Source of the DNA: Anaeramoeba ignava BMAN
Taxonomy: Eukaryota > Protista > Anaeramoebae
DNA length: 64,000 bases
Assembly (NCBI GenBank): GCA_028826165.1
Contig: JAPDFW010000077.1
Location: 310,001-374,000 of the forward strand
Reading direction: 5' to 3'
The notes beneath the pieces are model-generated. The model worked only from the letters and a program-made list of their open reading frames with translations, searched no databases and was not told the origin of the DNA. Shown here piece by piece: positions 1,443-57,946 of this stretch. Made by a program: the position numbers and the translations under genes. Numbering within the stretch: the first letter of the stretch is position 1; each line of letters opens with the position of its first letter.

Positions 1443-3194
1443 ATGAATGAAATTATATTTTTTGGAAGAAATTCAAATGCAAAACTTATTAAAAATGAAC
1501 CAGATTTAATAACAAAACCAATTCAATTTAAATTTGAAAATGAAAATGAAAATGAAAATGAAAATGAAAATCAAATTAAACAAATTTCAACAGGTTATTT
1601 TTCAATAATTTTCCTTTTTAAAAATGGAAAAGCAATAGAATATGAAAAAAATTCAAATCAAAATCCTTCAAAAATCCAAATTGAAAATATTCAAAAAGTA
1701 ACTGTTGGTAATTCAAATGAAGCTATTTTAACAATAGAAGGAAATCTATTTGCCAAAGGAGGTGATATTAATTCAGAAAATCCAAAAGAATTTATCAATA
1801 TTTCATCATTAATTGAAGATACAAATGATAGAATAATTGAAGATATTGTTTTTGGAAGACATTCAGTTTATTTCTTAACTTCAAATCAAAATGCTTATGG
1901 AATTGGTTCAAATGAATTTGCTCAACTTGATTTTGGTTCTATAACACTTAAAAGAACACAAAAACCAATTTTAATGATGAAAAATGTTTCTAAAATATTT
2001 TCAGGAATTTCTGCAGATCATGTTTTTCTTTTGAATTCAAATCAAGAATTATTTGGATGCGGCTATAATTTTTATGGTCAAGTTGGGTTAAATAAATTAG
2101 ACACAAAAATTGAAAAATTAACACAAATCCAAAATATTCCAAAAGGCAAAATAATTGATATTAAATGTGGTTTTAATCATTCAATAATGTTGATTGAAAA
2201 TGAAGATGAAAATGAAAATCCAAAAAGAAAACTTTATTCATGTGGAGATCACTTATGGAACGGACTTGGCAAAAATGAAAATACAAGAGGTTTTACTGAA
2301 ATCAAATCATCTTTATTTGAAAATGATAATATTCTTGAAATTTCTGTTGGACAACGTCATAATCTAGTTTTTACTTCCAATGGGAAACTGATCGTATTTG
2401 GAAATAATGATTACGGTCAATTAGGAAATGGTGATAAAGAAAAACAATTAATTCCAATTCAAATTGAACTTCCTAAATTAAGATTTAATGAAAATATTTC
2501 TAATTATCATGTTTCTTGTGGTGCTTTCAATTCATTTCTTTATTATTCTCCTTCTTCTCTTTCCAATCTTGAAGAAGATTTGATAAAATTATTTAAAAGA
2601 AAAGAATTTTGTGATATTTCATTTAAAACCAGAAATGGAGAAATAATTAAAGCTCATAAATTAATATTGAAATATAGATTAAATCAAAATCAAAATGAAA
2701 TTGAAAAACTTCAAGAATTAATTTCAAAAAAATCAATTAAAGAATCAAATCAAATATTTGAAATGATTTATTCAAACAGAATTATAAATCCAAAATTATA
2801 TTTTGAAATTAAAGAAATTATAAATTCCAATGAAAAAATAGAAGAAACAATGAAAAGAATTTATTTAAATGAAAATGAAAAAGATTTTATAATTGAAAGA
2901 AAAGAAAAACAATATAAATTCCCAAAATTAATATTAATAATGAGAAGTGAATTATATCGAGGAATGTTTTTATCTGTAACAGAAGATAAATCTAATAAAG
3001 TTACAGATTATAGTGAATTAAGTAATAAATCATTTCAATTATTAGAATATTGGATTTATTCAAATCAAATCAAAGAAGAAATTAAAATTACAAAAGAAAT
3101 AATCGATGAATTAGAAACTGGAATTGATTATTTTCAATTAAATCAAACAAATCCAAATTTATTTGATTTATTAATTAACAAATTTAATAATTAA
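1443..3194 (+). CDS. RCC1-repeat beta-propeller + BTB/POZ protein (copy A)
   Basis: RCC1 blades (GxNxxGQLG, CGxxHS) followed by a BTB-like region (FCDISF..IKAHKLIL) and a second BTB-like region ([23 protein letters not shown]). Single exon. Confidence 0.9.
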   Translation: MNEIIFFGRNSNAKLIKNEPDLITKPIQFKFENENENENENENQIKQISTGYFSIIFLFKNGKAIEYEKNSNQNPSKIQIENIQKVTVGNSNEAILTIEGNLFAKGGDINSENPKEFINISSLIEDTNDRIIEDIVFGRHSVYFLTSNQNAYGIGSNEFAQLDFGSITLKRTQKPILMMKNVSKIFSGISADHVFLLNSNQELFGCGYNFYGQVGLNKLDTKIEKLTQIQNIPKGKIIDIKCGFNHSIMLIENEDENENPKRKLYSCGDHLWNGLGKNENTRGFTEIKSSLFENDNILEISVGQRHNLVFTSNGKLIVFGNNDYGQLGNGDKEKQLIPIQIELPKLRFNENISNYHVSCGAFNSFLYYSPSSLSNLEEDLIKLFKRKEFCDISFKTRNGEIIKAHKLILKYRLNQNQNEIEKLQELISKKSIKESNQIFEMIYSNRIINPKLYFEIKEIINSNEKIEETMKRIYLNENEKDFIIERKEKQYKFPKLILIMRSELYRGMFLSVTEDKSNKVTDYSELSNKSFQLLEYWIYSNQIKEEIKITKEIIDELETGIDYFQLNQTNPNLFDLLINKFNN

Positions 3195-3455
3195 AATTAA
3201 AATTAAAATTAAAATTAAAATTAAAATTAAAATTAAAATTAAAATTAAAATTAAAATTAAAATTAAAATTAAAATTAAAATTAAAATTAAAATTAAAATC
3301 AAAATTAAAATTAAAATTAAAATTAAAATCAAAATTAAAATTAAAATTAAAAATTAAAATTAAAATTCAAAATTAAAATTAAAATTAAAATTAAAATTAA
3401 AATTAAAATTAAAATTAAAATCAAAATTAAAAATTAAAATTAAAAATTAAAATCC
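3192..3455 (+). repeat. (AAAATT)n microsatellite spacer
   Basis: Near-perfect hexamer array beginning at the stop codon of copy A. Confidence 0.95.
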
Positions 3456-3490
3456 AAAATTCATTTTTTCATTTTTTTTCTTTTTTGAAA

Positions 3491-5293
3491 ATGAATGAAA
3501 TTATATTTTTTGGTGAAAATCAATATCCAAAACTTATCGAAAATGAACCATATTCAATAATAAAACCAATTCAATTTAAATTTGAAAATGAAAATGAAAA
3601 TGAAAATGAAAAACAAATTAAACAAATTTCAACAGGAAGTTTTTCAATAATTTTCCTTTTTGAAAATGGAAAAGCAATAGAATATTTAAGATATTCAAAA
3701 CAAAATCCTGAAGAAATCCAAATTGAAGATATTCAAAAAGTAACTGTTGGTTCTCGAAATGAAGCTATTTTAACAATAGAAGGAAATGTATTTGCCAAAG
3801 GTGAATATATTAATCCAAAAAATCCAAATCAATTTATCAATATTTCATCATTAATTGAAGATATAAATGATAGAATAATTCAAGATATTGTTTCTGGATG
3901 TTTTTCAATTTACTTATTAACTTCAAATCATAATGCTTATGGAATTGGCTTAAATGAAAATGGTCAACTTGGTTTTGATTCTAAAACAATTGAAAAAACA
4001 GAAAAACCAATTTTAATGATGAAAAATGTTTCTAAAATATTTTCAGGAAGTTCTTCAAGACATGTTTTTCTTTTGAATTTAAATCAAGAATTATTTGGAT
4101 GTGGATGGAATCAATATGGTCAACTTGGATTAGGAGAATCAAGAGAAGAAACAAAAATCCAAAAATTAACCAAAATCCAAAAAATTCCAAAAGGCAAAAT
4201 AATTGATATTCAAGGTGGAAATACTCATTCAGTAATGTTGATTGAAAATGAAAATCCAAAAAGAAAACTTTATTCATGTGGAGATTATCGATATAATGGA
4301 TTTGAGAAAATCAGCTATCAATGTAAAAGAAAATTTACTGAAATTAAATCATCTTTATTTGAAAATGATAATATTCTTGAAATTTCTGTTGGATGTGATC
4401 ATACTTTGATTTTAACAACAAATTCAAAATTGATAGGATTTGGATGGAATTTTTATGGTGAATTAGGAACTGGAGATAAAGAAGATCAATCAATTCCAAT
4501 TCAAATTGAACTTCCTAAATTAAGATTTAATGAAAATATTTCCAATTATCATGTTTCTTGTGGTGAAAACAAATCATTTCTTTATTATTCTCCTTTTTCT
4601 CATCTTTCCAATCTTGAAGAAGATTTGATAAAACTATTTAGAAGAAAAGAATTTTGTAATATTTCATTTAAAACAGAAAATGGAGAAATAATTGAAGCTC
4701 ATAAATTAATATTGAAATATAGATTAAAAGATTATGGAAATCAAATTGAAAAACTTCAAGAAATTATTTCAAATAAATCAATTAAAGAATCAAATCAAAT
4801 ATTTGAGATGATTTATTCAAACAGAATTATAAATCCAAAATTATATTCTGAAATTAAAGAAATTATAAATTCAAATGAAAAAATTGAAGAAACAATTAAA
4901 AGAATTTATTTAAATGAAAATGAAAATGAAAAAGATTTTATTATTGAAAGAAAAGAAAAACAATATAAATTTCCTAAATTAATATTAATAATGAGAAGTG
5001 AATTATATAGAGGAATGTTTTTATCTGTAACAGAAGATAAATCTAATAAAGTTACAGATTATAGTGAATTAAGTGATGAATCATTTCAAATATTAGAATA
5101 TTGGATTTATTCAAATCAAATTAAAGATGGAATTCGAGTTAAATATAAAATAATTGATGAAATCAAAAGAGGAATTGATTATTTTCAATTAAATCAAACA
5201 AATCCAAATTTATTTGATTTATTAATTAAACAATTTAATAATCAAATTTCAAAATTAAATTTAAAATTAAAATCAAAATCAAAATTAAAATAA
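3491..5293 (+). CDS. RCC1 + BTB protein (copy B)
   Basis: Paralog of A. Start taken as the ATG at 3491 (MNEIIFFG), matching paralogs, rather than the TTG at 3485. Confidence 0.9.
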   Translation: MNEIIFFGENQYPKLIENEPYSIIKPIQFKFENENENENEKQIKQISTGSFSIIFLFENGKAIEYLRYSKQNPEEIQIEDIQKVTVGSRNEAILTIEGNVFAKGEYINPKNPNQFINISSLIEDINDRIIQDIVSGCFSIYLLTSNHNAYGIGLNENGQLGFDSKTIEKTEKPILMMKNVSKIFSGSSSRHVFLLNLNQELFGCGWNQYGQLGLGESREETKIQKLTKIQKIPKGKIIDIQGGNTHSVMLIENENPKRKLYSCGDYRYNGFEKISYQCKRKFTEIKSSLFENDNILEISVGCDHTLILTTNSKLIGFGWNFYGELGTGDKEDQSIPIQIELPKLRFNENISNYHVSCGENKSFLYYSPFSHLSNLEEDLIKLFRRKEFCNISFKTENGEIIEAHKLILKYRLKDYGNQIEKLQEIISNKSIKESNQIFEMIYSNRIINPKLYSEIKEIINSNEKIEETIKRIYLNENENEKDFIIERKEKQYKFPKLILIMRSELYRGMFLSVTEDKSNKVTDYSELSDESFQILEYWIYSNQIKDGIRVKYKIIDEIKRGIDYFQLNQTNPNLFDLLIKQFNNQISKLNLKLKSKSKLK

Positions 5294-5297
5294 AAAG

Positions 5298-5582
5298 AAA
5301 TTTAAAATTAAAATTAAAATTAAAATCAAAATCAAAAATTAAAATCAAAATTAAAATCAAAATTAAAATTAAAATCAAAAATCAAAATTAAAATCAAAAT
5401 TAAAATTAAAATTAAAATTAAAATCAAAATCAAAATTAAAATCAAAATTAAAATTAAAATTAAAATTCATTTATAAAATTAAAATTAAAATTAAAATTAA
5501 AATTAAAATTAAAATTAAAATTAAAATTAAAATCAAAAATAAAATTAAAATTAAAATTAAAATTAAAATTAAAATTAAAAAT
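5298..5582 (+). repeat. (AAAATT/AAAATC)n spacer
   Basis: Hexamer array between copies B and C. Confidence 0.9.
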
Positions 5583-5619
5583 CCAAAATATTTTTTTTTC
5601 ATTTTTTTTCTTTTCAAAA

Positions 5620-7416
5620 ATGAATGAAATTATATTTTTTGGTTGGAATAGGTATCCAAAACTTATCCAAAATGAACCAAAAAGAATAACAAAACCAATT
5701 CAATTTAAATTTGAAAATGAAAATGAAAATGAAAATGAAAAACAAATTAAACAAATTTCATCAGGTTACTTTTCAACAATTTTCCTTTTTAAAAATGGAA
5801 AAGCAATAGAATATTTAAATGAAGAATATCCAAATCAAAATCCTGAAGAAATCCAAATTGAAGAAAATATTCAAAAAGTATCTGTTGGTTATGAAAATGA
5901 AGCTATTTTAACAATAGAAGGAAGTGTATTTGCAAAAGGAAAAGATATTAATTCAGAAAATCCAAATGAATTTATTAATATTTCATCATTAATTAAAGAT
6001 ACAAATGATAGAGTAATTCAAGATGTTGTTTCTGGAAAAAATTCAATTTACTTATTAACTTCAAATCAAAATGCTTATGGAATTGGAGATAATCAATTTG
6101 GTCAACTTGGTTTTGATTCTAAAACACTTCCAAAAACAGAAAAACCAATTTTAATGATGAAAAATGTTTCTAAAATATTTTCAGGAAATTCTTCACTTTT
6201 TGTTTTTCTTTTAAATTCAAATCAAGAATTATTTGGATGCGGATATAATTATTATCGTCAACTTGGATTAGGAGAATCAAGAAAAAAATGGTGGATTCAA
6301 AAATTAATCAAAATCCAAAATATTCCAAAAGGCAAAATAATTGATATTCAATCTGGAATTAACCATTCGATAATGTTGATTGAAAATGAAATTGAAGATG
6401 AAAATCAAAATCCAAAAAGAAAACTTTATTCATGTGGAGATTATCGATATAATGGACTTGGCAAAGATGGTCGTGAAGATACTTATGAATTTACTGAAAT
6501 CAAATCATATTTATTTGAAAATGATGATGATTATGATTATATTATTGATTTTTCTTGTGGAGGTGTTCATACTTTGATTTTAACAGGAAATGGGAAACTG
6601 ATCGTATTTGGAAATAATGGATTTGGTGAATTAGGAACTGGAGATAAAGAAGATCAATCAATTCCAATTCAAATTGAACTTCCTAAATTAAGATTTAATG
6701 AAAATATTTCCAATTATCATATTTCTTGTGGATATTACAAATCATTTCTTTATTATTCTCCTTCTTTTTCCAATCTTGAAGAAGATTTGATAAAATTATT
6801 TAAAAGAAAAGAATTTTGTGATATTTCATTTAAAACCAGAAATGGAGAAATAATTGAAGCTCATAAATTAATATTGAAATATAGATTAAATCAATATGAA
6901 AATCAAAATCAAAAACTTCAAGAATTAATTTCAAAAAAATCAATTAAAGAATCCAATCAAATATTTGAAATGATTTATTCAAACAGAATAATAAATCCAA
7001 AATTATATTCAGAAATTAAAGAAATTATAAATTCAAATGAAAAAATAGAAGAAACAATGAAAAGAATTTATTTAAATGAAAATGAAAATGAAAAAGATTT
7101 TATAATTGAAAGAAAAGAAAAACAATATAAATTTCCTAAATTAATATTAATAATGAGAAGTGAATTATATCGAGGAATGTTTTTATCTGTAACAGAAGAT
7201 AAATCTAATAAAGTTACAGATTATAGTGAATTAAGTAATAAATCATTTCAAATATTTGAATATTGGATTTATTCAAATCAAATTAAAGATGGAATTCAAA
7301 TTACACAAGAGATCATTGAAGAATTAGAAATTGGAATTGATTATTTTCAATTAAATCAAACAAATCCAAATTTATTTGATTTATTAATTAACAAATTTAA
7401 TAATCAAAATCAATAA
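5620..7416 (+). CDS. RCC1 + BTB protein (copy C)
   Basis: Paralog of A and B with the same domain order. Confidence 0.9.
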   Translation: MNEIIFFGWNRYPKLIQNEPKRITKPIQFKFENENENENEKQIKQISSGYFSTIFLFKNGKAIEYLNEEYPNQNPEEIQIEENIQKVSVGYENEAILTIEGSVFAKGKDINSENPNEFINISSLIKDTNDRVIQDVVSGKNSIYLLTSNQNAYGIGDNQFGQLGFDSKTLPKTEKPILMMKNVSKIFSGNSSLFVFLLNSNQELFGCGYNYYRQLGLGESRKKWWIQKLIKIQNIPKGKIIDIQSGINHSIMLIENEIEDENQNPKRKLYSCGDYRYNGLGKDGREDTYEFTEIKSYLFENDDDYDYIIDFSCGGVHTLILTGNGKLIVFGNNGFGELGTGDKEDQSIPIQIELPKLRFNENISNYHISCGYYKSFLYYSPSFSNLEEDLIKLFKRKEFCDISFKTRNGEIIEAHKLILKYRLNQYENQNQKLQELISKKSIKESNQIFEMIYSNRIINPKLYSEIKEIINSNEKIEETMKRIYLNENENEKDFIIERKEKQYKFPKLILIMRSELYRGMFLSVTEDKSNKVTDYSELSNKSFQIFEYWIYSNQIKDGIQITQEIIEELEIGIDYFQLNQTNPNLFDLLINKFNNQNQ

Positions 7417-7424
7417 AGAAAATG

Positions 7425-7830
7425 AGAATAGATTTAATTTAATATTTAATTTATAAATTAATTTAAAAATATAATTTAATATTTAATTTTATTATTGAAA
7501 TAATAATTTAATGTTTTAGATTTAAATATTTTATTATTTAAATATTTAACATATAAATATAAAAAATGGAAATATATTTAATTTAATATTTAATTTATAA
7601 ATTAATTTAAAAATATAATTTAATATTTAATTTTATTATTAAAATAATAATTTAATGTTTTAGATTTAAATATTTTATTATTTAAATATTTAACATAAAA
7701 ATATAAAAAATAAGAATAGATTTAATTTAATATTTAATTTATAAATTAATTTAAAAATATAATTTAATATTTAATTTTATTATTAAAATAATAATTTAAT
7801 GTTTTAGATTTAAATATTTTTATTATTTAA
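7425..7830. repeat. AT-rich tandem repeat, ~3 x ~143 bp
   Basis: Unit containing ataataatttaatgttttagatttaaatatttta recurs at ~7500, ~7645 and ~7788. Confidence 0.8.
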
Positions 7831-8224
7831 AAATATTTTGAAAATTGATTTTTGAAATTAAAATTTTATCTTTTTTTTTGAATTAAATTGAATTAATATT
7901 AATTTGGAAATTTGTTTTAAAATTTAAATTTATTAATAATTTTTAAATTCCAAAAAAAAAATTAAATTAAAAATTAAATTAAAATAATTTTCCTTTTTTT
8001 AATAATAAAAATTAATAAAAATAATAATAATTTATTAATAAATTAATTTAAAATAATAAATTAAAAAGAAAATTAAATTAATTATTAATTTAAATTTATT
8101 CTCATTTTTATATTTTTATTTATTTTCAAAATCCACTTTTTATTCATTTTTTTTAAATTTTTTTTTCATTTTTCCTTTTTAATAAAACAAACAACAAAAA
8201 ACAAACAAAAAACAAAAAAACAAA

Positions 8225-9913
8225 ATGGATAATAATAATAATAAGAACCAAATTGAAAATGCAAATCAAATTGAAAATGAAAATGAAATGAAAAATTTAG
8301 AAAAAAAAGTAACAAAAAATTTAATTAAAGATTATTCAAACCTTTTAAATGGAAATTCATTTAAAGATTTTTCAATTTTTGTTGAGAATAAATCAAATCC
8401 TTTTGAAATTAAAGTTCATAAATCAATTTTATCTTCAAGATCTCCTTTTTTTGATAAGTTTTTAAGAGAACAAAACGATATTGATAAAATTTTTTTAAAT
8501 CAATTTAATAAAAAAGAAATGGAATCAATTTTGAGTTATATTTATTATGGAAATATTTCTTTTGAGAATCAAGAAAATCTTATCCAATTATTGGAAATTT
8601 CAATTTATTTTAAATTAAATTTATTGAAAGAAATTATTCAAAAAAAAATTTCAAATTCAATTAATTATTCAAATTTTTTCCAATTTTTATTCCAAAATCG
8701 AAATTTAAATTCAAATGAAATTGAAATAAAATGCTTTGAATTAATAAATCAAAATTTTTCCCAAATTAAGAATAATGAGAATTTATTCAATTTAACTAAA
8801 GAAGAAATTAACAAATTTATTCAATTTAAACAAGAAAAAAAAGAAATTTTTCAATTTGATTTTTTTCAATTTTTAAATAATTGGATTAAAAAAAGAGTTA
8901 ATTCATTAAAATTAAAGAAATATGAACACAAAATGAATGCAAAGAAAAGATTATTTCATTCTTTTTTTTTATTATTTGATAAAGATTCAATTTCAAAACA
9001 AGATTTTGATAAATTAAAACAATTTGATTTTTTTCCCAAATCTTTTTTAGTTGATATTCAAAACAAAGTTATTCAAGAAAAGAAAATTCAAGAGAAAGAA
9101 AAGAAAATTCAAGAGAAAGAAAAGAAAATTAAAAGAAGAGATAAAAGAATCAAAGAAAAAGATAAAAAAATTAAATCATTTGAATCAGAGATTCGAAATT
9201 TGAAATCTGAAAATAAGAAGAAAGAAAAGGAAATTGAAGAGAAAAACAAAGAAAATCAACAAATGAAAATTGAAATTGAAGAGAAAAACAAAGAAATTGA
9301 AGATAAATGGAAGAAAGAGAACGAGGAACTGAAATCCAAATTTGAATTAATGGAATTAAGAAAGATTTTTCCAGATTCAGAAATTATTCAAGATATTGAA
9401 TATGTTAAGAAATTACAAGAATGGATAAATGATAATGATTTTTTTTCTAAAATGAAAAAAGGATTTTCAGCAAAAAGAGATGGATTTAATTCTCAAAATT
9501 GGCATAAAGCGGTTGATGGGAAAAGAAAAACATTAGTTATTATCAAAACAAAAGATAATTTTATTTTTGGAGGTTTTACTCAAGTTGGATTTAATGGAAA
9601 TACAGGAAACATTTATGATTCAAATGCATTTATTTTTTCATTAAGAAATGATAAAGGAGATAGAATACCTGCAAAGTTTACATATAAACTAGGTCATGCA
9701 ATTTATTCTAGTTTAAATTATGGTCCATATTTTGGTTATAGTGATAATTATGATTTTTATTTAGAATCTAATTTACAACCTGGTTATTCAAATTTTGGTT
9801 GGAGTTATAATCTACCTAATGGAATTACTTATGGAACAAATGAAGCTAAAAGTTATTTAGCTGGTTCTCCTGATAAATGGGTTGTTGATGAACTTGAAAC
9901 TTATTTCATTTAA
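8225..9913 (+). CDS. BTB/POZ - coiled coil - TLDc domain protein
   Basis: N-terminal BTB (FKDFSIFV..IKVHKSILSSRSPFF), K/E-rich coiled coil, C-terminal TLDc (FSAKRDGF..WHKAVDGK..TLVIIKT..FIFGGFT..AFIFSL..YGPYFG..ELETYFI). Confidence 0.9.
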   Translation: MDNNNNKNQIENANQIENENEMKNLEKKVTKNLIKDYSNLLNGNSFKDFSIFVENKSNPFEIKVHKSILSSRSPFFDKFLREQNDIDKIFLNQFNKKEMESILSYIYYGNISFENQENLIQLLEISIYFKLNLLKEIIQKKISNSINYSNFFQFLFQNRNLNSNEIEIKCFELINQNFSQIKNNENLFNLTKEEINKFIQFKQEKKEIFQFDFFQFLNNWIKKRVNSLKLKKYEHKMNAKKRLFHSFFLLFDKDSISKQDFDKLKQFDFFPKSFLVDIQNKVIQEKKIQEKEKKIQEKEKKIKRRDKRIKEKDKKIKSFESEIRNLKSENKKKEKEIEEKNKENQQMKIEIEEKNKEIEDKWKKENEELKSKFELMELRKIFPDSEIIQDIEYVKKLQEWINDNDFFSKMKKGFSAKRDGFNSQNWHKAVDGKRKTLVIIKTKDNFIFGGFTQVGFNGNTGNIYDSNAFIFSLRNDKGDRIPAKFTYKLGHAIYSSLNYGPYFGYSDNYDFYLESNLQPGYSNFGWSYNLPNGITYGTNEAKSYLAGSPDKWVVDELETYFI

Positions 9914-10394
9914 AAATTAATTAATAATAAGAAAATCAAACTTTTTTTTTTTAATTTTTTTTTCAAAATTTAATTCAATTTTAATTTACTTTTAATCAAA
10001 TTAATTTCTTTAAAATAATAAATAAGAAACAAATTTAATTTTAAATAATTTAATTTTAATTTAAAATATTTATTAAAAATTTAATTAATAAAAAATAATC
10101 CAAAAAAGAAAATAATAAATTTTAAAAAATTGAATATTTTTAATATAATAAATAAAAATAAAAATTGAAAATAGAAATTAATAATAATTAAATTTAAATT
10201 CATTAATTAAAATATTAAAATAAAAAAAATCAAATAAAATTTATTATTAATTAATATTTAAATATTAATAAATTATAATCAAAATCAAAAATAGAATAAT
10301 TAGTAAATTATTTTTTTAGAAAGTTTATCTTATTCAATCATGTTAAATTCAATTTATTTAAAATTTTTTAATTTTTTAATTTTATTTTTAATAT

Positions 10395-10996
10395 ATTTTA
10401 TTATAATTAAAATTGGAATAATAAATAAATAAAAATATTAATATAATAAATGAAAATATTATTTTAAATCAAAATAAAATAAATTTAAATTAAATTATTA
10501 TTAAATATTATTAAAATTAAATATATATCTTTATTAAAATATTTATTCCACTTTTTAATATATTTTATTATAATTAAAATTGGAATAATAAAAATTAAAA
10601 ATATTAATATAATAAATAAAAATAATATTTCAAATTAAAATAAAATAAATTTAAATTAAATTATTATTAAATATTATTAAAATTAAATATTTATCTTTAT
10701 TAAAATATTTCAATTTTCTTCTCAATTTTATTAAATTATTGGGAATATTTTTATATTATTTTAAATAAATAAATATTAATAAAATATATAAAATATAATT
10801 AATTTCAAATTTAATTATTTAATATTCTTTATTCCATTTTTGAAATAAATTAATAAAAATATTTTATTAATTTTATTTAATTATTGAGAATAATTTTATA
10901 TTATTTTAAATAAATAAATATTAATAAAATATATAAAATATAATTAATTTGAAATTTAATTATTTAATATTCTTTATTCCATTTTTGAAATAAATT
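10395..10996. repeat. two adjacent tandem duplications (~170 bp x2, then ~145 bp x2)
   Basis: ttattataattaaaattggaataataa at ~10398 and ~10566. tattctttattccatttttgaaataaattaat at ~10823 and ~10968. Confidence 0.75.
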
Positions 10997-11317
10997 AATG
11001 AAAAAGATTTTATTATTGAAAGAAAAGAAAAACAATATAAATTTCCTAAATTAATATTAATAATGAGAAGTGAATTATATCGAGGAATGTTTTTATCTGT
11101 TACAAATGATACATCTAATAAAGTTACAGATTATAGTGAATTAAGTAATAAATCATTTCAAATATTTGAATATTGGATTTATTCAAATCAAATTAAAGAA
11201 GAAATTAAAATTACAAAAGAAATCATTGAAGAATTAGAAATTGGAATTGATTATTTTCAATTAAATCAAACAAATCCAAATTTATTTGATTTATTAATTA
11301 ACAAATTTAATAATTAA
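10997..11317 (+). pseudogene. 5'-truncated RCC1-BTB copy (A'), C-terminal ~106 codons only
   Basis: Homology begins abruptly at AAT GAA AAA GAT TTT ([12 protein letters not shown]...) and ends KEEIKITKEII..KFNN*, like copy A. Upstream is non-coding repeat DNA. Confidence 0.85.
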
Positions 11318-11902
11318 ATTTAAAATTAAAATTAAAATCAAAATTAAAATCAAAATCAAAATCAAAATCAAAATTAAAATTAAAATTAAAATTAAAATTA
11401 AAATTAAAATTAAAATTAAAATTAAAATTAAAATTAAAATTAAAATTAAAATTAAAATTAAAATTAAAATCAAAATTTAAAATTAAAATTAAAATTAAAA
11501 TTAAAATTAAAATTAAAATTAAAATTAAAATTAAAATTAAAATTAAAATTAAAATCAAAATTAAAATTAAAATTAAAATTAAAATTAAAATTTAAAATTA
11601 AAATTAAAATTAAAATTAAAATTAAAATTAAAATTAAAATTAAAATTAAAATTAAAATTAAAATTAAAATTAAAATTAAAATTAAATTTAAAATTAAAAT
11701 TAAAATTAAAATTAAAATCAAAATTTAAATTAAAATTAAAATTAAAATTAAAATTAAAATTAAAAATCAAAATTAAAATTAAAATTAAAAATTAAAATTA
11801 AAATTAAAATTAAAATTAAAATTAAAATTAAAATTAAAATTAAAATAAAAATTAAAATTAAAATCAAAATTAAAATAAAAATTAAAAATTAAAATTAAAA
11901 TT
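11315..11902 (+). repeat. (AAAATT)n spacer
   Basis: ~590-bp hexamer array. Confidence 0.95.
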
Positions 11903-11930
11903 CATTTTTTCATTTTTTTTCTTTTCAAAA

Positions 11931-13754
11931 ATGAATGAAATTTTATTTTGTGGTGAAAATCAATATCCAAAACTTTTCAAAAATGAACAAGATAAAATAA
12001 AAAAACCAATTCAATTTAAATTTGAAAATGAAAATGAAAATGAAAATGAAAAACAAATTAAACAAATTTCAACAGGAAGTTTTTCAATAATTTTCCTTTT
12101 TGAAAATGGAAAAGCAATAGAATATTTAAGATATTCAAAACAAAATCCTGAAGAAATCCAAATTGAAGATATTCAAAAAGTAACTGTTGGTTCTCGAAAT
12201 GAAGCTATTTTAACAATAGAAGGAAATGTATTTGCCAAAGGTGAAAATATTAATCCAAAAAATCCAAATCAATTTATCAATATTTCATCATTAATTGAAG
12301 ATATAAATGATAGAATAATTCAAGATATTGTTTCTGGATGTTTTTCAATTTACTTATTAACTTCAAATCATAATGCTTATGGAATTGGTGATAATCAATA
12401 TGGTCAACTTGGTTTTGATTCTAAAACAATTGAAAAAACAGAAAAACCAATTTTAATGATGAAAAATGTTTCTAAAATATTTTCAGGAAGTTCTTCAAGA
12501 CATGTTTTTCTTTTAAATTCAAATCAAGAATTATTTGGATGCGGATGGAATCAATATGGTCAACTTGGATTAGGAGAATCAAGAGAAGAAACAAAAATCC
12601 AAAAATTAACCAAAATCCAAAAAATTCCAAAAGGTAAAATAATTGATATTCAAGGTGGAAATACTCATTCAGTAATGTTGATTGAAAATGAAAATCCAAA
12701 AAGAAAACTTTATTCATGTGGAGATTATCGATATAATGGACTTGAGAAAATCAGCTATCAATGTAAAAGAAAATTTACTGAAATTAAATCATCTTTATTT
12801 GAAAATGATAATATTCTTGAAATTTCTGTTGGATGTGATCATACTTTGATTTTAACAACAAATTCAAAATTGATAGGATTTGGATGGAATTTTTATGGTG
12901 AATTAGGAACTGGGAATACAAATGATCAATTAATTCCAATTCAAATTGAACTTCCTAAATTAAGATTTAATGAAAATATTTCCAATTATCATGTTTCTTG
13001 TGGTGGTCACAAATCATTTCTTTATTATTCTCCTTATTATTCTCCTTTATTTTCTCATCTTTCCAATCTTGAAGAAGATTCGATAAAACTATTTAGAAGA
13101 AAAGAATTTTGTAATATTTCATTTAAAACCAGAAATGGAGAAATAATCAAAGCTCATAAATTAATATTGAAATATAGATTAAAAGATTATGGAAATCAAA
13201 TTGAAAAACTTCAAGAAATTATTTCAAATAAATCAATTAAAGAATCAAATCAAATATTTGAGATGATTTATTCAAACAGAATTATAAATCCAAAATTATA
13301 TTCTGAAATTAAAGAAATTATAAATTTAAATGAAAAAATTGAAGAAACAATTAAAAGAATTTATTTAAATGAAAATGAAAATGAAAATGAAAAAGATTTT
13401 ATTATTGAAAGAAAAGAAAAACAATATAAATTTCCTAAATTAATATTAATAATGAGAAGTGAATTATATCGAGGAATGTTTTTATCTGTAACAGAAGATA
13501 AATCTAATAAAGTTACAGATTATAGTGAATTAAGTGATGAATCATTTCAAATATTAGAATATTGGATTTATTCAAATCAAATTAAAGATGGAATTCGAGT
13601 TAAATATAAAATAATTGATGAAATCAAAAGAGGAATTGATTATTTTCAATTAAATCAAACAAATCCAAATTTATTTGATTTATTAATTAAACAATTTAAT
13701 AATCAAATTTCAAAATTAAATTTAAAATTAAAATCAAAATCAAAATTAAAATAA
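11931..13754 (+). CDS. RCC1 + BTB protein (copy B')
   Basis: Nearly identical to B, including the KLNLKLKSKSKLK tail. Confidence 0.9.
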   Translation: MNEILFCGENQYPKLFKNEQDKIKKPIQFKFENENENENEKQIKQISTGSFSIIFLFENGKAIEYLRYSKQNPEEIQIEDIQKVTVGSRNEAILTIEGNVFAKGENINPKNPNQFINISSLIEDINDRIIQDIVSGCFSIYLLTSNHNAYGIGDNQYGQLGFDSKTIEKTEKPILMMKNVSKIFSGSSSRHVFLLNSNQELFGCGWNQYGQLGLGESREETKIQKLTKIQKIPKGKIIDIQGGNTHSVMLIENENPKRKLYSCGDYRYNGLEKISYQCKRKFTEIKSSLFENDNILEISVGCDHTLILTTNSKLIGFGWNFYGELGTGNTNDQLIPIQIELPKLRFNENISNYHVSCGGHKSFLYYSPYYSPLFSHLSNLEEDSIKLFRRKEFCNISFKTRNGEIIKAHKLILKYRLKDYGNQIEKLQEIISNKSIKESNQIFEMIYSNRIINPKLYSEIKEIINLNEKIEETIKRIYLNENENENEKDFIIERKEKQYKFPKLILIMRSELYRGMFLSVTEDKSNKVTDYSELSDESFQILEYWIYSNQIKDGIRVKYKIIDEIKRGIDYFQLNQTNPNLFDLLIKQFNNQISKLNLKLKSKSKLK

Positions 13755-13758
13755 AAAG

Positions 13759-14035
13759 AAATTAAAATTAAAATTAAAATCAAAATCAAAATTAAAATTA
13801 AAATTAAAAATCAAAATTAAAATTAAAATCAAAATTAAAAATCAAAATTAAAATTAAAATTAAAATTAAAATCAAAATTAAAATTAAAATCAAAATTAAA
13901 ATTAAAATTAAAATTAAAATTAAAATTAAAATTAAAATTAAAATTAAAATTAAAATTAAAATTAAAATTAAAATTAAAATTAAAATCAAAAATAAAATTA
14001 AAATTAAAATTAAAATTAAAATTAAAATTAAAAAT
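13759..14035 (+). repeat. (AAAATT)n spacer
   Basis: Hexamer array. Its 3' end matches the B-C spacer (aaaaatccaaaatattttttt). Confidence 0.9.
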
Positions 14036-14072
14036 CCAAAATATTTTTTTTTCATTTTTTTTCTTTTCAAAA

Positions 14073-15878
14073 ATGAATGAAATTATATTTTTTGGTTGGA
14101 ATAGGTATCCAAAACTTATCCAAAATGAACCAAAAAGAATAAAAAAACCAATTCAATTTAAATTTGAAAATGAAAATGAAAATGAAAATGAAAATGAAAA
14201 TGAAAATGAAAATGAAAAACAAATTAAACAAATTTCATCAGGTTACTTTTCAACAATTTTCCTTTTTAAAAATGGAAAAGCAATAGAATATTTATTTAAT
14301 TCAAATCAAAAACCTAAAAAAATCCAAATTGAAGAAAATATTCAAAAAGTAACTGTTGGTTTTGAAAATGAAGCGATTTTAACAATAGAAGGAAATGTAT
14401 TTGCCAAAGGAAAAGATATTAATCCAGAAAATCCAAATAAATTTATCAATATTTCATCATTAATTAAAGATACAAATGATAGAATAATTCAAGATATTGT
14501 TTCTGGAAAAAATTCAATTTACTTATTAACTTTAAATCAAAATGCTTATGGAATTGGAGATAATCAATTTGGTCAACTTGGTTTTGATTCTAAAACACTT
14601 AATAAAACAGAAAAACCAATTTTAATGATGAAAAATGTTTCTAAAATATTTTCAGGATTTTCAAATCATATTTTTCTTTTAAATTCAAATCAAGAATTAT
14701 TTGGATGTGGATATAATTATTATGGTCAAATTGGATTAGGAGAATCAAGAATAGAAACAACAATCAATAAATTAACCAAAATCCAAAATATTCCAAAAGG
14801 TAAAATAATTGATATTCAATCTGGAATTAACCATTCGATAATGTTGATTGAAAATGAAATTGAAGATGAAAATCAAAATCCAAAAAGAAAACTTTATTCA
14901 TGTGGAGATTATCGATATAATGGACTTGGCAAAGATGGTCGTGAAGATACTTATGAATTTACTGAAATCAAATCATCTTTATTTGAAGATGATGATAATG
15001 TTATTGATTTTTCTATTGGAAATACTCATACTTTGATTTTAACTTCCAATTCAAAATTGATTGGATTTGGAGGTAATTTATATGGTGAATTAGGAACTGG
15101 AGATACAAAATATCAATTAATTCCAATTCAAATCGAACTTCCTAAATTAAGATTTAATGAAGATATTTCCAATTATCATATTTCTTGTGGATATTACAAA
15201 TCATTTCTTTATTATTCTCCTTCTTCTTTTTCCAATCTTGAAGAAGATTTGATAAAATTATTTGAAAGAAAAGAATTTTGTGATATTTCATTTAAAACCA
15301 AAAATGGAGAAATAATTAAAGCTCATAAATTAATATTGAAATATAGATTAAATCAAAATCAAAATCAAATTGAAAAACTTCAAGAAATTATTTCAAAAAA
15401 ATCAATTAAAGAATCAAATCAAATATTTGAAATGATTTATTCAAATAATTCCAAAATAAATCCAAAATTATATTCTGAAATTAAAGAAATTATAAATTCA
15501 AATGAAAAAATTGAAGAAACGATGAAAAAAATTTATTTAAATGAAAATGAAAAAGATTTTATTATTGAAAGAAAAGAAAAACAATATAAATTTCCTAAAT
15601 TAATATTAATAATGAGAAGTGAATTATATCGAGGAATGTTTTTATCTGTAACTGAAGATAAATCTAATAAAGTTACAGATTATAGTGAATTAAGTAATAA
15701 ATCATTTCAAATATTTGAATATTGGATTTATTCAAATCAAATTAAAGATGGAATTCAAATTACAAAAAAAATAATTAATGAAATTCAAATAGGAATTGAT
15801 TATTTTCAATTAAATCAAACAAATCCAAATTTATTTGATTTATTAATTAAGAAATTTAATAATCAAAATCAAAATTAA
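14073..15878 (+). CDS. RCC1 + BTB protein (copy C')
   Basis: Shares the N-terminus (FFGWNRYPKLIQNEPKRI) and the GINHS..GKDGREDTYEF block with C. Confidence 0.9.
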   Translation: MNEIIFFGWNRYPKLIQNEPKRIKKPIQFKFENENENENENENENENEKQIKQISSGYFSTIFLFKNGKAIEYLFNSNQKPKKIQIEENIQKVTVGFENEAILTIEGNVFAKGKDINPENPNKFINISSLIKDTNDRIIQDIVSGKNSIYLLTLNQNAYGIGDNQFGQLGFDSKTLNKTEKPILMMKNVSKIFSGFSNHIFLLNSNQELFGCGYNYYGQIGLGESRIETTINKLTKIQNIPKGKIIDIQSGINHSIMLIENEIEDENQNPKRKLYSCGDYRYNGLGKDGREDTYEFTEIKSSLFEDDDNVIDFSIGNTHTLILTSNSKLIGFGGNLYGELGTGDTKYQLIPIQIELPKLRFNEDISNYHISCGYYKSFLYYSPSSFSNLEEDLIKLFERKEFCDISFKTKNGEIIKAHKLILKYRLNQNQNQIEKLQEIISKKSIKESNQIFEMIYSNNSKINPKLYSEIKEIINSNEKIEETMKKIYLNENEKDFIIERKEKQYKFPKLILIMRSELYRGMFLSVTEDKSNKVTDYSELSNKSFQIFEYWIYSNQIKDGIQITKKIINEIQIGIDYFQLNQTNPNLFDLLIKKFNNQNQN

Positions 15879-27479: not shown

Positions 27480-28580
27480 AGATTTAGATTTATATTTAGA
27501 TTTTGATTTTGATTTTGATTTTAATTTTAATTTTAATTTTGATTTTGATTTTGATTTTAATTTTGATTTTGATTTTGATTTTGATTTTCATTTTAATTTT
27601 GGTTTATATTTTGATTTTCATTTTGATTTTCATTTATATTTTAATTTTGATTTTGATTTTGATTTTCATTTTGATTTTCATTTAGATTTTGATTTATATT
27701 TTGATTTATATTTTGATTTATATTTTGATTTTGATTTTGATTTTGATTTTGATTTTGATTTTGATTTTGATTTTGATTTATATTTTGATTTTCATTTTGA
27801 TTTTGATTTATATTTTAATTTTGATTTTGATTTTGATTTTGATTTTGATTTATATTTTAATTTTGATTTATATTTTAATTTTGATTTTGATTTTCATTTA
27901 TTTTGATTTTGATTTTAATTTTGATTTTGATTTTGATTTTGATTTTGATTTTGATTTTGATTTTGATTTTGATTTTGATTTTGATTTTGATTTTGATTTT
28001 GATTTTGATTTTGATTTTCGTTTTGATTTTGATTTTGATTTTGATTTTGGTTTATATTTTGATTTTGATTTTCATTTTGATTTTGATTTTCATTTTCATT
28101 TTCATTTTCATTTAGATTTTCATTTTCATTTTCATTTTCATTTAGATTTTCATTTTCATTTTGATTTTGATTTTGATTTTGATTTTAATTTTGATTTATA
28201 TTTTAATTTTGATTTTGATTTTCATTTATTTTGATTTTCATTTATTTTGATTTTCATTTATTTTGATTTTGATTTTAATTTTGATTTTGATTTTGATTTT
28301 GATTTTGATTTTGATTTTGATTTTGATTTTGATTTTGATTTTGATTTTGATTTTGATTTTGATTTTCGTTTTGATTTTGATTTTGATTTTCATTTTGGTT
28401 TATATTTTGATTTTCATTTTGGTTTATATTTTCATTTTGATTTTCATTTTCATTTTCATTTAGATTTTCATTTTCATTTTCATTTAGATTTTGATTTTCA
28501 TTTTGATTTATATTTTCATTTTCATTTTGATTTTGATTTTGATTTTCATTTAGATTTTGATTTTCATTTTCATTTTGATT
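27480..28580 (-). repeat. (AAAATC/AAAATG/AATATA)n tract spanning the USP C-terminus and 3' region
   Basis: The NQ/NE-coding repeat continues ~800 bp beyond the stop at 28275. Confidence 0.9.
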
Positions 28581-53341: not shown

Positions 53342-55711
53342 ATGAATGATATTTTTTATTTTGGTGAAAATCATCTTCGTTTTGTTTTTCAAAATGAACC
53401 AAGACAAATAACAAAACCAATTCAACTTAAACTTCCAAATCAAAATCAAAATCAAAATCAAAATGAAAATCAAAATCAAAATGAAAATCAAAATCAAAAT
53501 CAAAATCAAAATCAAAATCAAAATCAAAATCAAAATCAAAATCAAAATCAAAATCAAAATCAAAATCAAAATCAAAATAAAAATCAAAATAAAAATCAAA
53601 ATCAAAATGAAAATCAAAATGAAAATCAAAATCAAATTGAAAATCAAAATAAAAATCAAAATCAAAATAAAAATCAAAATAAAAATCAAAATCAAAATCA
53701 AAATCAAAATCAAATTGAAAATGAAAATCAAAATGAAAATCAAAATCAAAATCAAAATCAAAATCAAAATCAAATTCAAAATCAAAATCAAATTGAAAAT
53801 CAAAATCAAAATCAAAATCAAAATCAAAATCAAAATAAAAATCAAAATAAAAATCAAAATCAAAATCAAAATCAAAATCAAATTGAAAATGAAAATCAAA
53901 ATCAAAATCAAAATCAAAATCAAAATCAAATTGAAAATGAAAATGAAAATCAAAATCAAAATCAAAATGAAAAACAAAATCAAAATCAAAATCAAAATCA
54001 AAATCAAAATCAAATTGAAAATGAAAATGAAAATGAAAATGAAAATGAAAAACAAATTAAACAAATTGCATCAAGTTACTTGGGAACAATTTTCCTTTTT
54101 GAAAATGGAAAAGCAATTAAATATTTAAAAGATTCAAGTCAAAAACCTCATAAAATTGAAATTAAAAAAATTCAAAAAATCACAAGTAATTTCCAAAATG
54201 TAGCTATTTTAACAATAGAAGGAAATGTATTTGCAAAAGGAAGAAATGTTAATCCAAATAATACAAATGAATTCATCAATATTTCATCATTAATTGAAGA
54301 TATAAATGATAGAATAATTGAAGATATTATTTCTTCATACAATGCATTTTACTTATTAACTTTAAATCAAAATGCTTATGGAATTGGTTCAAATTATAAT
54401 GGTCAACTTGGTTTTGATTCTGAAACACTTCCAAAAACAGAAAAACCAATTTTAATGATGAAAAATGTTTCTAAAATATTTACAGGAATTGCTTCAATTC
54501 ATGTTTTTCTTTTAAATTCAAATCAAGAATTATTTGGATGTGGTGATAACTATTATGGTCAACTTGGATTAAGAGAATCAGTGAGAGAATCAAGAAAAAT
54601 CCAAAAATTAACTAAAATCCAAAATATTCCAAAAGGTAAAATAATTGATATTCAATGCGGCAGTGATCATTCAATAATGTTGATTGAAAATGAAGATGAA
54701 AATGAAAATGAAAATCCAAAAAGAAAACTTTATTCATGTGGAAAATATGGAGCTAATGGACTTGGCAAAAATGAAAATACTTATGAATTTACTCAAATCA
54801 AATCATCTTTATTTGAAAATGATTATATTCTTGAAATTTCTTGTGGAAATTATCATACTTTGATTTTAACATCCAATTCAAAATTAATAGGATTTGGAGG
54901 TAATTCTTGGAGTCAATTAGGAAATGGAGATACAAAAGATCAATCAATTCCAATTCAAATTGAACTTCCTAAATTAAGATTTAATGAAGATATTTCCAAG
55001 TATCATATTTATTGTGGGCATTGGAATAGTTCATTTCTTTATTATTCTCCCTTTCTTTCTTCTTTTTCCAATCTTGAAGAAGATTTGATAAAATTATTTA
55101 GAAAAAAAGAATTTTGTGATATTTCATTTAAAACAGAAGATGGAGAAATAATTGAAGCTCATAAATTAATATTAAAATATAGATTAAAAGATCAAAATCA
55201 AATTGAAAAACTTCAAGAAATTATTTCAAAAAAATCAATTAAAGAATCAAATCAAATATTTGAAATGATTTATTCAAACAATTCCAAAATAAATCCAAAA
55301 TTATATTCAGAAATTAAAGAAATTATAAATTCAAATGAAAAAATTGAAGAAACAATTAAAAGAATTTATTTAAATGAAAATGAAAATGAAAAAGATTTTA
55401 TAATTGAAAGAAAAGAAAAACAATATAAATTTCCTAAATTAATATTAATAATGAGAAGTGAATTATATCGAGGAATGTTTTTATCTGTAACAAATGATAC
55501 TTCTAATAAAGTTACAGATTATAGTGAATTAAGTAATAAATCATTTCAATTATTTGAATATTGGATTTATTCAAATCAAATTAAAGATGAAATTGAAATT
55601 ACACAAGAAATTATTGAAGAAATTAAAATTGGGATTGATTATTTTCAATTAAATCAAACATATCCAAATTTATTTGATTTATTAATTAACAAATTTAATA
55701 ATCAAAATTAA
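53342..55711 (+). CDS. RCC1 + BTB protein (copy D) with ~200-aa N/Q insert
   Basis: Start taken at ATG 53342 (MNDIFYFG), matching copy E. Same architecture as A-C. Confidence 0.88.
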
Positions 55712-56053: not shown

Positions 56054-57946
56054 ATGAATGATATTTTTTATTTTGGTGAAAATCATCTTCGTTTTGTTTT
56101 TCAAAATGAACCAAGACAAATAACAAAACCAATTCAACTTAAACTTCCAAATCAAAATCAAAATCAAAATCAAAATCAAAATCAAAATCAAAATCAAAAT
56201 CAAAATCAAAATCAAAATCAAAATCAAAATGAAAATCAAAATGAAAATGAAAATCAAATTCAAAATGAAAATGAAAAACAAATTAAACAAATTGCATCAA
56301 GTTACTTGGGAACAGTTTTCCTTTTTAAAAATGGAAAAGCAATTAAATATTTAAAAGATTCAAGTCAAAAACCTCATAAAATTGAAATTAAAAAAATTCA
56401 AAAAATCACAAGTAATTTCCAAAACGAAGCTATTTTAACAAAAGAAGGAAATGTATTTGCAAAAGGAAAAGATATTAATCCAAATAATACAAATGAATTC
56501 ATCAATATTTCATCATTAATTGAAGATATAAATGATAGAATAATTGAAGATATTGTTTCTGGATATAGTGTCTTTTACTTATTAACTTCAAATCAAAATG
56601 CTTATGGAATTGGTTCAAATAATTATGACCAACTTGGATTTGATTCTATAACACTTTATAAAACAGAAAAACCAATTTTAATGATGAAAAATGTTTCTAA
56701 AATATTTACAGGAATTACTTCAAATAATGTTTTTCTTTTAAATTCAAATCAAGAATTATTTGGATGTGGTGATAATAGATTTGGCCAACTTGGATTAGGA
56801 GAATCAACAAGAGAAGCAAAAATCCCAAGATTAACCCAAATCCAAAATATTCCAAAAGGCAAAATAATTGATATTCAATCTGGGCTTGATCATTCAATAA
56901 TGTTGATTGAAAATTTAGATGAAACTCAATATCAATATCAAAATCCAAAAAGAAAACTTTATTCATGTGGAAAATATGAAGTTAATGGACTTGGCAAAGA
57001 TGAAAATACTTATAAATTTACTGAAATCAAATCATTTTTATTTGAAAATGATTATATTCTTGAAATTTCTGTTGGAAATAATCAAACTTTGATTTTAACA
57101 TCCAATAATAAGTTGATAGGATTTGGAGACAATTCTTGGAGTCAATTAGGAACTGGAAATACAAAAGATAAAATTCCAATTCAAATCGAACTTCCTAAAT
57201 TAAGATTTAATGAAAATATTTCTAATTATCATATTTATTGTGGGCATTGGAATAGTTCATTTCTTTATTATTCTCCTCCTTATTTTTCCAATCTTGAAGA
57301 AGATTTGATAAAATTATTTAGAAGAAAAGAATTTTGTAATATTTCATTTAAAACAGAAAATGGAGAAATAATTGAAGCTCATAAATTAATATTAAAATAT
57401 AGATTAAATCAAGATCAAAATCAAATTGAAAAACTTCAAGAAATTATTTCAAATAAATCAATTAAAGAATCAAATCAAATATTTGAAATGATTTATTCAA
57501 ACAGAATAATAAATCCAAAATTATACTTTGAAATTAAAGAAATTATAAATTCCAATGAAAAAATTGAAGAAACAATGAAAAGAATTTATTTAAATGAAAA
57601 TGAAAAAGATTTTATTATTGAAAGAAAAGAAAAACAATATAAATTTCCAAAATTAATATTAATAATGAGAAGTGAATTATATCGAGGAATGTTTTTATCT
57701 GTAACAGAAGATACTTCTAATAAAGTTACAGATTATAGTGAATTAAGTAATAAATCATTTCAAATATTTGAATATTGGATTTATTCAAATCAAATTAAAG
57801 AAGGAATTCAAATTACAGAGCAAATAATTAATGAATTAGAAAGAGGAATTGATTATTTTCAATTAAATCAAACAAATCCAAATTTATTTGATTTATTAAT
57901 CAACAAATTTAATAATCAAAAAAAAGAAAAATGTTTAATTTTTTAA
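56054..57946 (+). CDS. RCC1 + BTB protein (copy E) with C-terminal CaaX-like motif
   Basis: Closest to D. Ends ...NQKKEKCLIF*. Confidence 0.9.
   Translation: MNDIFYFGENHLRFVFQNEPRQITKPIQLKLPNQNQNQNQNQNQNQNQNQNQNQNQNQNENQNENENQIQNENEKQIKQIASSYLGTVFLFKNGKAIKYLKDSSQKPHKIEIKKIQKITSNFQNEAILTKEGNVFAKGKDINPNNTNEFINISSLIEDINDRIIEDIVSGYSVFYLLTSNQNAYGIGSNNYDQLGFDSITLYKTEKPILMMKNVSKIFTGITSNNVFLLNSNQELFGCGDNRFGQLGLGESTREAKIPRLTQIQNIPKGKIIDIQSGLDHSIMLIENLDETQYQYQNPKRKLYSCGKYEVNGLGKDENTYKFTEIKSFLFENDYILEISVGNNQTLILTSNNKLIGFGDNSWSQLGTGNTKDKIPIQIELPKLRFNENISNYHIYCGHWNSSFLYYSPPYFSNLEEDLIKLFRRKEFCNISFKTENGEIIEAHKLILKYRLNQDQNQIEKLQEIISNKSIKESNQIFEMIYSNRIINPKLYFEIKEIINSNEKIEETMKRIYLNENEKDFIIERKEKQYKFPKLILIMRSELYRGMFLSVTEDTSNKVTDYSELSNKSFQIFEYWIYSNQIKEGIQITEQIINELERGIDYFQLNQTNPNLFDLLINKFNNQKKEKCLIF

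Follow-up and report, generated by a model that had tools for sequence, protein, structure and literature searches.

More than a thousand RCC1-BTB-BTB loci in Anaeramoeba ignava, varied on one propeller face: a candidate repertoire of ubiquitin-ligase adaptors

Why should a protist carry rows of near-identical RCC1-BTB genes that differ from one another at a few fixed codons? The question is raised by a 64,000-nucleotide stretch of the Anaeramoeba ignava BMAN genome (assembly GCA_028826165.1, contig JAPDFW010000077.1, positions 310,001 to 374,000 of the forward strand), hereafter the window. A first-pass annotation had described seven intact RCC1-BTB paralogs here, with "CDR-like" sites (after the complementarity-determining regions of antibodies) in every propeller blade, and had proposed that a constant ligase-docking module carries a rapidly diversified binding surface. 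All seven open reading frames (ORFs) are indeed present, with Pfam RCC1 and BTB matches in 7/7. The near-invariant framework and BTB half, the constant motifs quoted and the dipeptide and GxNxxG variants listed are all found in our alignment. The genes are named W1, W2, W3, W5, W6, W7 and W8, and residue numbers follow W1.

Entropy was calculated over 149 paralogs, a sample biased towards relatives of W1, and positions with at least 2.5 bits were called hypervariable. There are 29 such sites, all within propeller residues 1-370, each occupied by 11-18 different residues. The BTB half has no position above 2 bits, and mean entropy is 0.71 bits in the propeller versus 0.22 in the BTB half. Paralog pairs have a median identity of 17% at the 29 hypervariable sites against 92% at 476 low-entropy sites, and 148 of the 149 proteins carry a unique combination of residues at the variable sites. 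The sites had been called rich in Tyr, Trp and Phe; Tyr (15.5% vs 3.6%) and Trp (1.5% vs 0.1%) are enriched, together with Arg and Asp, but Phe is not (6.6% vs 6.0%). Both of the classes proposed to vary in each blade are real, but not in every copy: the sisters W2 and W5 (96% identical) share most of these residues. The sites originally listed are correct and incomplete, as the same classes recur at residues 9-12, 52, 107, 190-192 and 269-271. "CDR-like" is apt as a description of the pattern, but the paralogs differ in the germline, and nothing points to somatic diversification. In small clades of A. flamelloides with the same architecture, these loops are nearly constant (few sequences, perhaps strain orthologues). 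Hence, RCC1 loops are not hypervariable by default.

The variable sites cluster on one face of the propeller, equivalent to the tryptophan interface of UVR8, the face being assigned from strand topology and the UVR8 alignment and not from distances measured on the model. AlphaFold2 predicts a seven-bladed W1 propeller with a predicted local distance difference test score (pLDDT) mostly above 85. Foldseek matches it to HERC2 RLD2, RPGR, RCC1 and UVR8 (E ~1e-25 to 1e-21), with template-modelling (TM) scores by target of 0.7-0.8 for HERC2, RPGR and RCC1. Together with Pfam PF00415/PF13540 matches over cut-off, the seven-bladed model identifies an RCC1-like domain. Secondary structure places the Gly-x-x-His sites in A-B loops and the Gly-x-Asn-x-x-Gly sites at C-D loop starts, both of which lie on one face owing to the four-stranded antiparallel topology of the blades. 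In total, 13 hypervariable sites are in A-B loops, 11 at C-D starts, four further along C-D loops and one in a strand, these classes being defined by structure; on the opposite face, 0 of 65 positions are hypervariable. In the profile alignment, residue 304 corresponds to UVR8 W285, which the W285A entry confirms, and residue 321 to W302. Both tryptophans sit in the UVR8 dimer interface (PMC7455749).

Nonsynonymous diversity exceeds the synonymous baseline at the variable face. DNA analyses covered 53 intact and 21 broken copies, and codon tests were run with custom scripts, not codeml. In a tree-free estimate on the 53 intact genes, nonsynonymous diversity (piN) is 0.377 (95% 0.285-0.462) in A-B loops and 0.348 (95% 0.256-0.438) at C-D starts, against a framework synonymous diversity (piS) of 0.098. 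The piN/piS ratio is 3.6-3.8 in both loop classes versus 0.38 in the BTB part, and piN is 0.04-0.06 on the opposite face and 0.037 in the BTB part. A codon grid also favours sites where the nonsynonymous rate (dN) exceeds the synonymous rate (dS); twice the log-likelihood difference is ~1,380 under a single synonymous rate and 100 when that rate may vary. An excess of dN over dS is thus found in the binding domain but not in the presumed ligase-binding (BTB) domain. The idea of a constant scaffold with a diversified surface holds on both counts: scattered sites with dN/dS of at most 1, the contrary pattern, were looked for and not seen.

How, then, does the variation arise? The gene tree is star-like and weakly supported. 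Framework variants are correlated with an r2 of 0.16 within 6 nt and of 0.02, the sampling floor, beyond (permutation p <0.001). Among 86 four-fold sites, 49 are invariant and 12 have at least 10 minor copies, where a Poisson distribution expects 2.2 and 0.4; several are two-allele sites without the favoured T. Sister copies differ in patches (significant in 5/6 pairs), and their differences at variable codons involve one, two or three nucleotides in proportions of 22:20:4, close to those of random paralogs. Triplet runs switch to the neighbour gene, and codons 156-159 of W5 match the neighbour W3, not the sister W2. Synonymous diversity is 0.197 at one codon from variable codons and 0.029 beyond 10 (stratified p=0.004), a gradient that hitch-hiking next to balanced sites would produce. 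Unlinked variants, patchy sisters and this synonymous peak point to frequent short-tract gene conversion with diversifying selection, and the decay of linkage and the mosaic tracts among paralogs are those of a gene-conversion family. The copies behave as if they were freely recombining alleles of a population. It is highly probable that short-tract conversion homogenises the scaffold and recombines loop alleles, that diversifying selection keeps the 11-18 residues per site, and that copies are born in small tandem arrays, many of them dying. In Supplementary Data 4 of the genome paper (PMC11550330), the SPO11 row (PTHR10848) appears empty in all three Anaeramoeba genomes; if true, conversion is non-meiotic or Spo11-independent.

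The window holds a small part of the family. The assembly (42.8 Mb, 147 contigs; R9.4 nanopore reads with Pilon polishing) contains 1,093 occurrences of a 26-nt propeller motif and 1,259 of a 27-nt BTB2 motif, with none for the reversed patterns. The family therefore comprises about 1,100-1,260 loci in 43 Mb, broken copies included; the published proteome has 14,817 proteins. The best 120 homologues of W1 are all A. ignava proteins (~71-83% identity), and DNA identity within this young clade of >1,000 copies is ~86-90%. Copies form small tandem arrays on many contigs, with A-rich hexamer repeats between them. Among 39 unselected copies from two contigs, 18 are intact and 21 broken; small indels account for most of the breaks, large deletions or stops for some. 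Roughly half of the family is thus intact in the assembly, and part of the broken copies may be assembly errors given the R9.4 nanopore and Pilon procedure. Copy counts and broken share together indicate a large lineage-specific expansion with birth and death. A. flamelloides holds the same architecture at ~27-31% identity, in small distant clades, and a word-limited search found no comparable burst of copies there. In two A. ignava proteins, P0126 and P0138, the RCC1-BTB-BTB module is fused behind long N-termini annotated as "aardvark" (armadillo repeats). A small share of the family's words occurs in metagenome runs X6, X8 and X10 (hydrothermal vent, microbial mat and marine sediment); in X6, short pieces match the BTB part, hinting at wild relatives.

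What could the other half of the protein do? The BTB half is constant, as first described, but it actually consists of two BTB domains. Whole-protein AlphaFold2 models are poor for BTB2 (pLDDT <50), and the module was refolded with divergent homologues. The C-terminal 210 residues then form two BTB domains (pLDDT 93.6) that are predicted to pair like a BTB dimer. The best PDB match is the tethered Miz1-BCL6 POZ heterodimer, over the whole length, and structure matches in the Atlas are BTBD7 and the Cul3 adaptors LZTR1, RhoBTB3 and ABTB1 (TM 0.68-0.80). PF00651 over cut-off, profile matches to the Cul3 adaptors KBTBD4 (E 7e-12) and SPOP (E 4e-9), the best for BTB2, and the confident model establish the BTB/POZ fold. 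The genome has eight Cullin_Nedd8 matches, which may include a Cul3. IBTK, which also combines RCC1 repeats and two BTBs, binds Cul3 and is a proven Cul3 adaptor in which both BTBs are needed (PMC4447969). To judge from these similarities, the constant tandem BTB probably engages a cullin (Cul3-type) RING ligase, which would ubiquitylate the proteins bound. As a 3-box is lacking and the phi-x-E motif is degenerate, we do not class the family as Cul3 adaptors; most likely it works like them. The sole moderately variable patch of the BTB module, W1 residues 545-559 (~3075-3119), is located on helix alpha5, which belongs to the hairpin that usually contacts cullins.

Overall, we lean towards a conversion-shuffled, selected propeller repertoire that tags its targets through a cullin ligase. 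A. ignava has a germline repertoire of about 1,100-1,260 RCC1-BTB-BTB genes, predicted to be cytosolic, and each protein displays its own set of ~25-30 residues on a single side of the constant propeller; the expansion, the clustering on one face and the excess of nonsynonymous diversity are demonstrated. Very short DNA tracts would be exchanged among copies, homogenising the scaffold and recombining loop alleles, and selection favouring rare alleles would keep many residues per site in circulation. The tandem BTB would dock a Cul3-type RING ligase, and proteins bound by the propeller would be ubiquitylated. The weakest step concerns the targets, which may be foreign proteins that evolve quickly (from viruses or mobile elements, or effectors of symbionts, prey or intracellular bacteria), in cell-autonomous defence or surveillance. 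The A. ignava symbiont encodes a type VI secretion system (PMC11550330), and to see in it a possible source of targets is speculation.

Several observations weigh against this explanation. More than half of the unselected copies are broken (21/39), and transcript support is limited to divergent relatives in the EukProt transcriptome, with none for these copies. No sequencing run is labelled as RNA, and run X5, of unspecified kind, contains no splice joint and was set aside. On the side of selection, a dual-rate model gives a posterior of 0.9 at only 11 of the 29 sites because synonymous rates are also raised at variable codons, and tree-based tests are inflated by recombination, so that the selection claim rests on the tree-free result. 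As for conversion, no long tract reached significance in a GENECONV-like global test, and part of the pattern also emerges from a tree simulation with site-specific rates (62-67% shared framework alleles vs 78% observed). In addition, intact genes show a 1.7-fold excess of private changes close to variable sites (p=0.02), which leaves room for local mutagenesis; broken copies show no such excess (p=0.62). Regarding the ligase, the L-K-E of the KBTBD4 phi-x-E motif aligns to T-E/N-D in BTB2, with Thr in place of the hydrophobic residue and a nearly invariant Asp as the acidic one. No 3-box follows BTB2, a single helix separating the YFQL helix from the stop, and the protein ends a median of 23 residues past the start of the YFQL motif. 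The 3-box is described as critical for high-affinity Cul3 binding (PMC4447969). Finally, transcription-factor POZ domains match the BTB fold as well as Cul3 adaptors do.

These last features feed the most serious rival, in which the same selected and converted repertoire acts without cullins: the self-paired tandem BTB would oligomerise or recruit another effector, and binding itself would neutralise, sequester or signal. The best match to a POZ heterodimer and the fusion of the same module behind armadillo repeats agree with it. On the other hand, some BTB adaptors bind Cul3 without a 3-box, the acidic residue of phi-x-E is nearly invariant, and LZTR1 and IBTK, which have a propeller, a tandem BTB and a known function, are Cul3 adaptors; we regard this rival as unlikely, if well worth considering. 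Somewhat more doubtful still is an extended form of the preferred explanation, an antibody-like intracellular system in which the binding-face codons of >1,000 propeller receptors would be recombined by directed short-tract conversion with broken copies as donors, and recognition of symbiont or pathogen proteins would be coupled to ubiquitylation and would help to police the symbiosome.

Internal partners, rather than microbes, would drive diversification if the family served intragenomic conflict or self-recognition, as selfish or kin-recognition genes, for instance toxin-antidote-like elements or suppressors of mobile elements and inteins. The extreme, species-restricted and dispersed amplification with many broken copies would fit, as would the massive intein content of Anaeramoeba (PMC10710043). 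But no linked partner gene, transposase or reverse transcriptase is seen beside the arrays within the window, and no signal peptide or membrane segment that could serve cell-cell recognition is evident from the RCC1-BTB-BTB sequence; we hold this to be improbable. We give less credit again to the idea that the proteins act as adaptors or exchange factors on expanded families of the host's own proteins, such as the Rab GTPases that run the symbiosome. RCC1-like propellers bind small GTPases, and LZTR1 targets GTPases of the RAS family. Anaeramoeba also has expanded Rab and TBC families (PMC11550330). However, stable endogenous partners predict conserved subfamilies, not unique combinations in 148 of 149 proteins with almost no linkage between sites.

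A targeted mutator acting at fixed codons, similar to diversity-generating retroelements (DGRs) or based on localized error-prone repair, is slightly less credible than that. Variable codons and their immediate neighbours are enriched in synonymous changes and rare variants too, and many differences involve several nucleotides, as a mutator might produce. Yet all four bases change and the ancestral or preferred base is retained at third positions, in contrast to adenine-specific DGRs; private changes are not raised at variable codons (0.005) and broken copies lack enrichment nearby; and 93% of sister differences at variable sites are alleles present in other paralogs (a tree simulation also gives 87-97%). 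DGR-like mutagenesis was rejected, the codon spectra at the 29 sites showing no adenine-specific signature. Without distinction of type, the genome has 17 RVT_1 matches, none on this contig and most in long retroelement-sized frames. Least probable of all is neutral genomic drift with relaxed loops, a process invoked for the F-box expansions of plants (PMC3030570), or an artefact of polishing a nanopore assembly with cross-mapped short reads, which the R9.4 and Pilon procedure and the half of copies that look broken might suggest: relaxed sites cannot exceed the synonymous baseline 3.6-3.8-fold, so that piN above piS rejects relaxation there, exposed opposite-face loops are conserved, and the short-read contigs over W6 carry no other letters, one of single-copy depth spanning site 321-323 exactly, which argues against a polishing artefact at variable sites and largely refutes both for these sites, not for the share of broken copies.

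Table 1. Positions in the window of the RCC1-BTB-BTB genes, of the variable sites of W1 and of associated features.
Feature	Position	Strand	Evidence
W1 RCC1-BTB-BTB gene, 583 aa, residue-number reference	1443..3194	+	ORF, Pfam, AlphaFold2 models
W1 seven-bladed RCC1-like propeller, residues 1-370, holds every hypervariable site	1443..2552	+	Foldseek, entropy
Hypervariable C-D loop start, residues 9-12	1467..1478	+	entropy, AlphaFold2 model
Hypervariable A-B loop, residue 52	1596..1598	+	entropy, AlphaFold2 model
Hypervariable A-B loop, residues 90-91	1710..1715	+	entropy, AlphaFold2 model
Hypervariable C-D loop start, residue 107	1761..1763	+	entropy, AlphaFold2 model
Hypervariable A-B loop, residues 139-140	1857..1862	+	entropy, AlphaFold2 model
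Variable C-D loop start (GxNxxG), residues 156-159, 158 hypervariable	1908..1919	+	entropy, AlphaFold2 model
Hypervariable A-B loop, residues 190 and 192	2010..2018	+	entropy, AlphaFold2 model
Hypervariable C-D loop start, residues 208 and 210	2064..2072	+	entropy, AlphaFold2 model
Hypervariable A-B loop, residues 244-245	2172..2177	+	entropy, AlphaFold2 model
Hypervariable C-D loop start, residues 269 and 271	2247..2255	+	entropy, AlphaFold2 model
Hypervariable A-B loop, residues 304-305, aligned to UVR8 W285-R286	2352..2357	+	entropy, profile alignment
Hypervariable C-D loop start, residues 321 and 323, 321 aligned to UVR8 W302	2403..2411	+	entropy, profile alignment
Hypervariable A-B loop, residues 361-362	2523..2528	+	entropy, AlphaFold2 model
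W1 tandem BTB-BTB, predicted intramolecular pseudo-dimer, little variability, no 3-box	2562..3191	+	pLDDT 93.6, PDB and Atlas structure matches
W2 RCC1-BTB-BTB gene, sister of W5 (96% aa)	3491..5293	+	Pfam, alignment
Candidate gene-conversion tract, 30 nt, W2 identical to neighbour W3 (6634-6663), unlike sister W5	4466..4495	+	sequence comparison, triplet runs
W3 RCC1-BTB-BTB gene, sister of W6 (89% aa)	5620..7416	+	Pfam, alignment
BTB-coiled coil-TLDc gene within the array, other family	8225..9913	+	Pfam
Orphan 3-prime piece of BTB2 (94% identity to W1), left from a lost copy	10982..11317	+	ORF list, sequence comparison
W5 RCC1-BTB-BTB gene, sister of W2	11931..13754	+	Pfam
W6 RCC1-BTB-BTB gene, sister of W3	14073..15878	+	Pfam, short-read contigs
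W7 RCC1-BTB-BTB gene, long Asn/Gln insertion after residue 31	53342..55711	+	ORF, Pfam, alignment
W8 RCC1-BTB-BTB gene, sister of W7	56054..57946	+	ORF, Pfam, alignment

The interval 1443-15878, initially presented as an RCC1-BTB array, contains five such genes but also the BTB-TLDc gene and the orphan BTB2 fragment. The BTB-coiled coil-TLDc gene (8225-9913) may belong to its own expanded family of BTB fusions. A propeller of FG-GAP repeats with a likely signal peptide (58239-59762, +) adjoins the second RCC1-BTB pair, W7/W8. By sequence motifs, the window also holds two USP-type deubiquitinase-like genes and one HECT-type E3-like gene (28275-31427, -; 42082-44277, +; 46353-51512, +). An EF1-alpha-like GTPase gene (38581-39912, -) is GC-rich beyond the habit of this genome, and 16068-22152 (-) encodes a large multi-exon membrane protein with cysteine-rich repeats and a beta-helix-like extracellular part.

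Our literature search found no description of an RCC1-BTB-BTB family. In the main text of the genome paper (PMC11550330), RCC1, BTB, cullin and ubiquitin are not mentioned; its supplement may tabulate the expansion, and related PANTHER labels occur in its lateral-transfer table. The family is a real, strongly patterned and apparently undescribed diversifying repertoire of E3-adaptor type, shuffled by conversion; both its scaffold and its branch of eukaryotes are new for such a repertoire. It bears on the open question of how a protist detects foreign proteins within its own cell; nematodes and plants have so far supplied most of the large ubiquitin-adaptor repertoires known to be under positive selection. 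Here, the host is a deep-branching carrier of bacterial symbionts, with ~1,100-1,260 loci beside 14,817 annotated proteins. The family probably lets the cell recognise many target proteins and tag them for destruction. It is a testable system, with a constant scaffold, ~29 mapped residues and a measurable reshuffling mechanism, and a natural library of propeller-based binders.

The closest precedents are the F-box and MATH-BTB adaptor repertoires of nematodes and plants (Thomas 2006, through PMC4334554). They share with the A. ignava family hundreds of paralogs, birth and death, positive selection in the substrate-binding domain, a constant cullin-binding domain and a proposed role in defence. 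In contrast, the binding domain is an RCC1 propeller in A. ignava, the repertoire sits in a free-living anaerobic metamonad, one young clade of >1,000 copies is reshuffled by short-tract conversion, and cullin binding is predicted only. In domain order, the proteins resemble the Cul3 adaptors IBTK, fission yeast Btb1 and RCBTB1-2, in which RCC1 repeats precede BTB, with two BTBs in IBTK (PMC4447969). However, those are single-copy and conserved and have a 3-box, IBTK also having ankyrins and a long tail, all of which the A. ignava proteins lack. The predicted tandem BTB superimposes on those of LZTR1, RhoBTB3, ABTB1 and BTBD7 at the TM scores given above, and LZTR1 also joins a propeller to two BTBs; these proteins differ by Kelch, GTPase or ankyrin N-termini, by BACK extensions and by the absence of hypervariability. 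Conversion-driven repertoires include the peptide-binding region of the major histocompatibility complex, the mosaics of trypanosome variant surface glycoproteins, chicken immunoglobulin and Borrelia vlsE. There too, short tracts are swapped among paralogs under diversifying selection, with a synonymous peak beside selected codons, but the A. ignava proteins are cytosolic and have no demonstrated single expression site or somatic programme. With DGRs, the family shares a constant scaffold whose variable residues are rich in aromatics and sit at fixed codons; unlike them, it lacks an adenine-specific signature, neither a template repeat nor a linked reverse transcriptase was seen, and its variation is spread over many copies.

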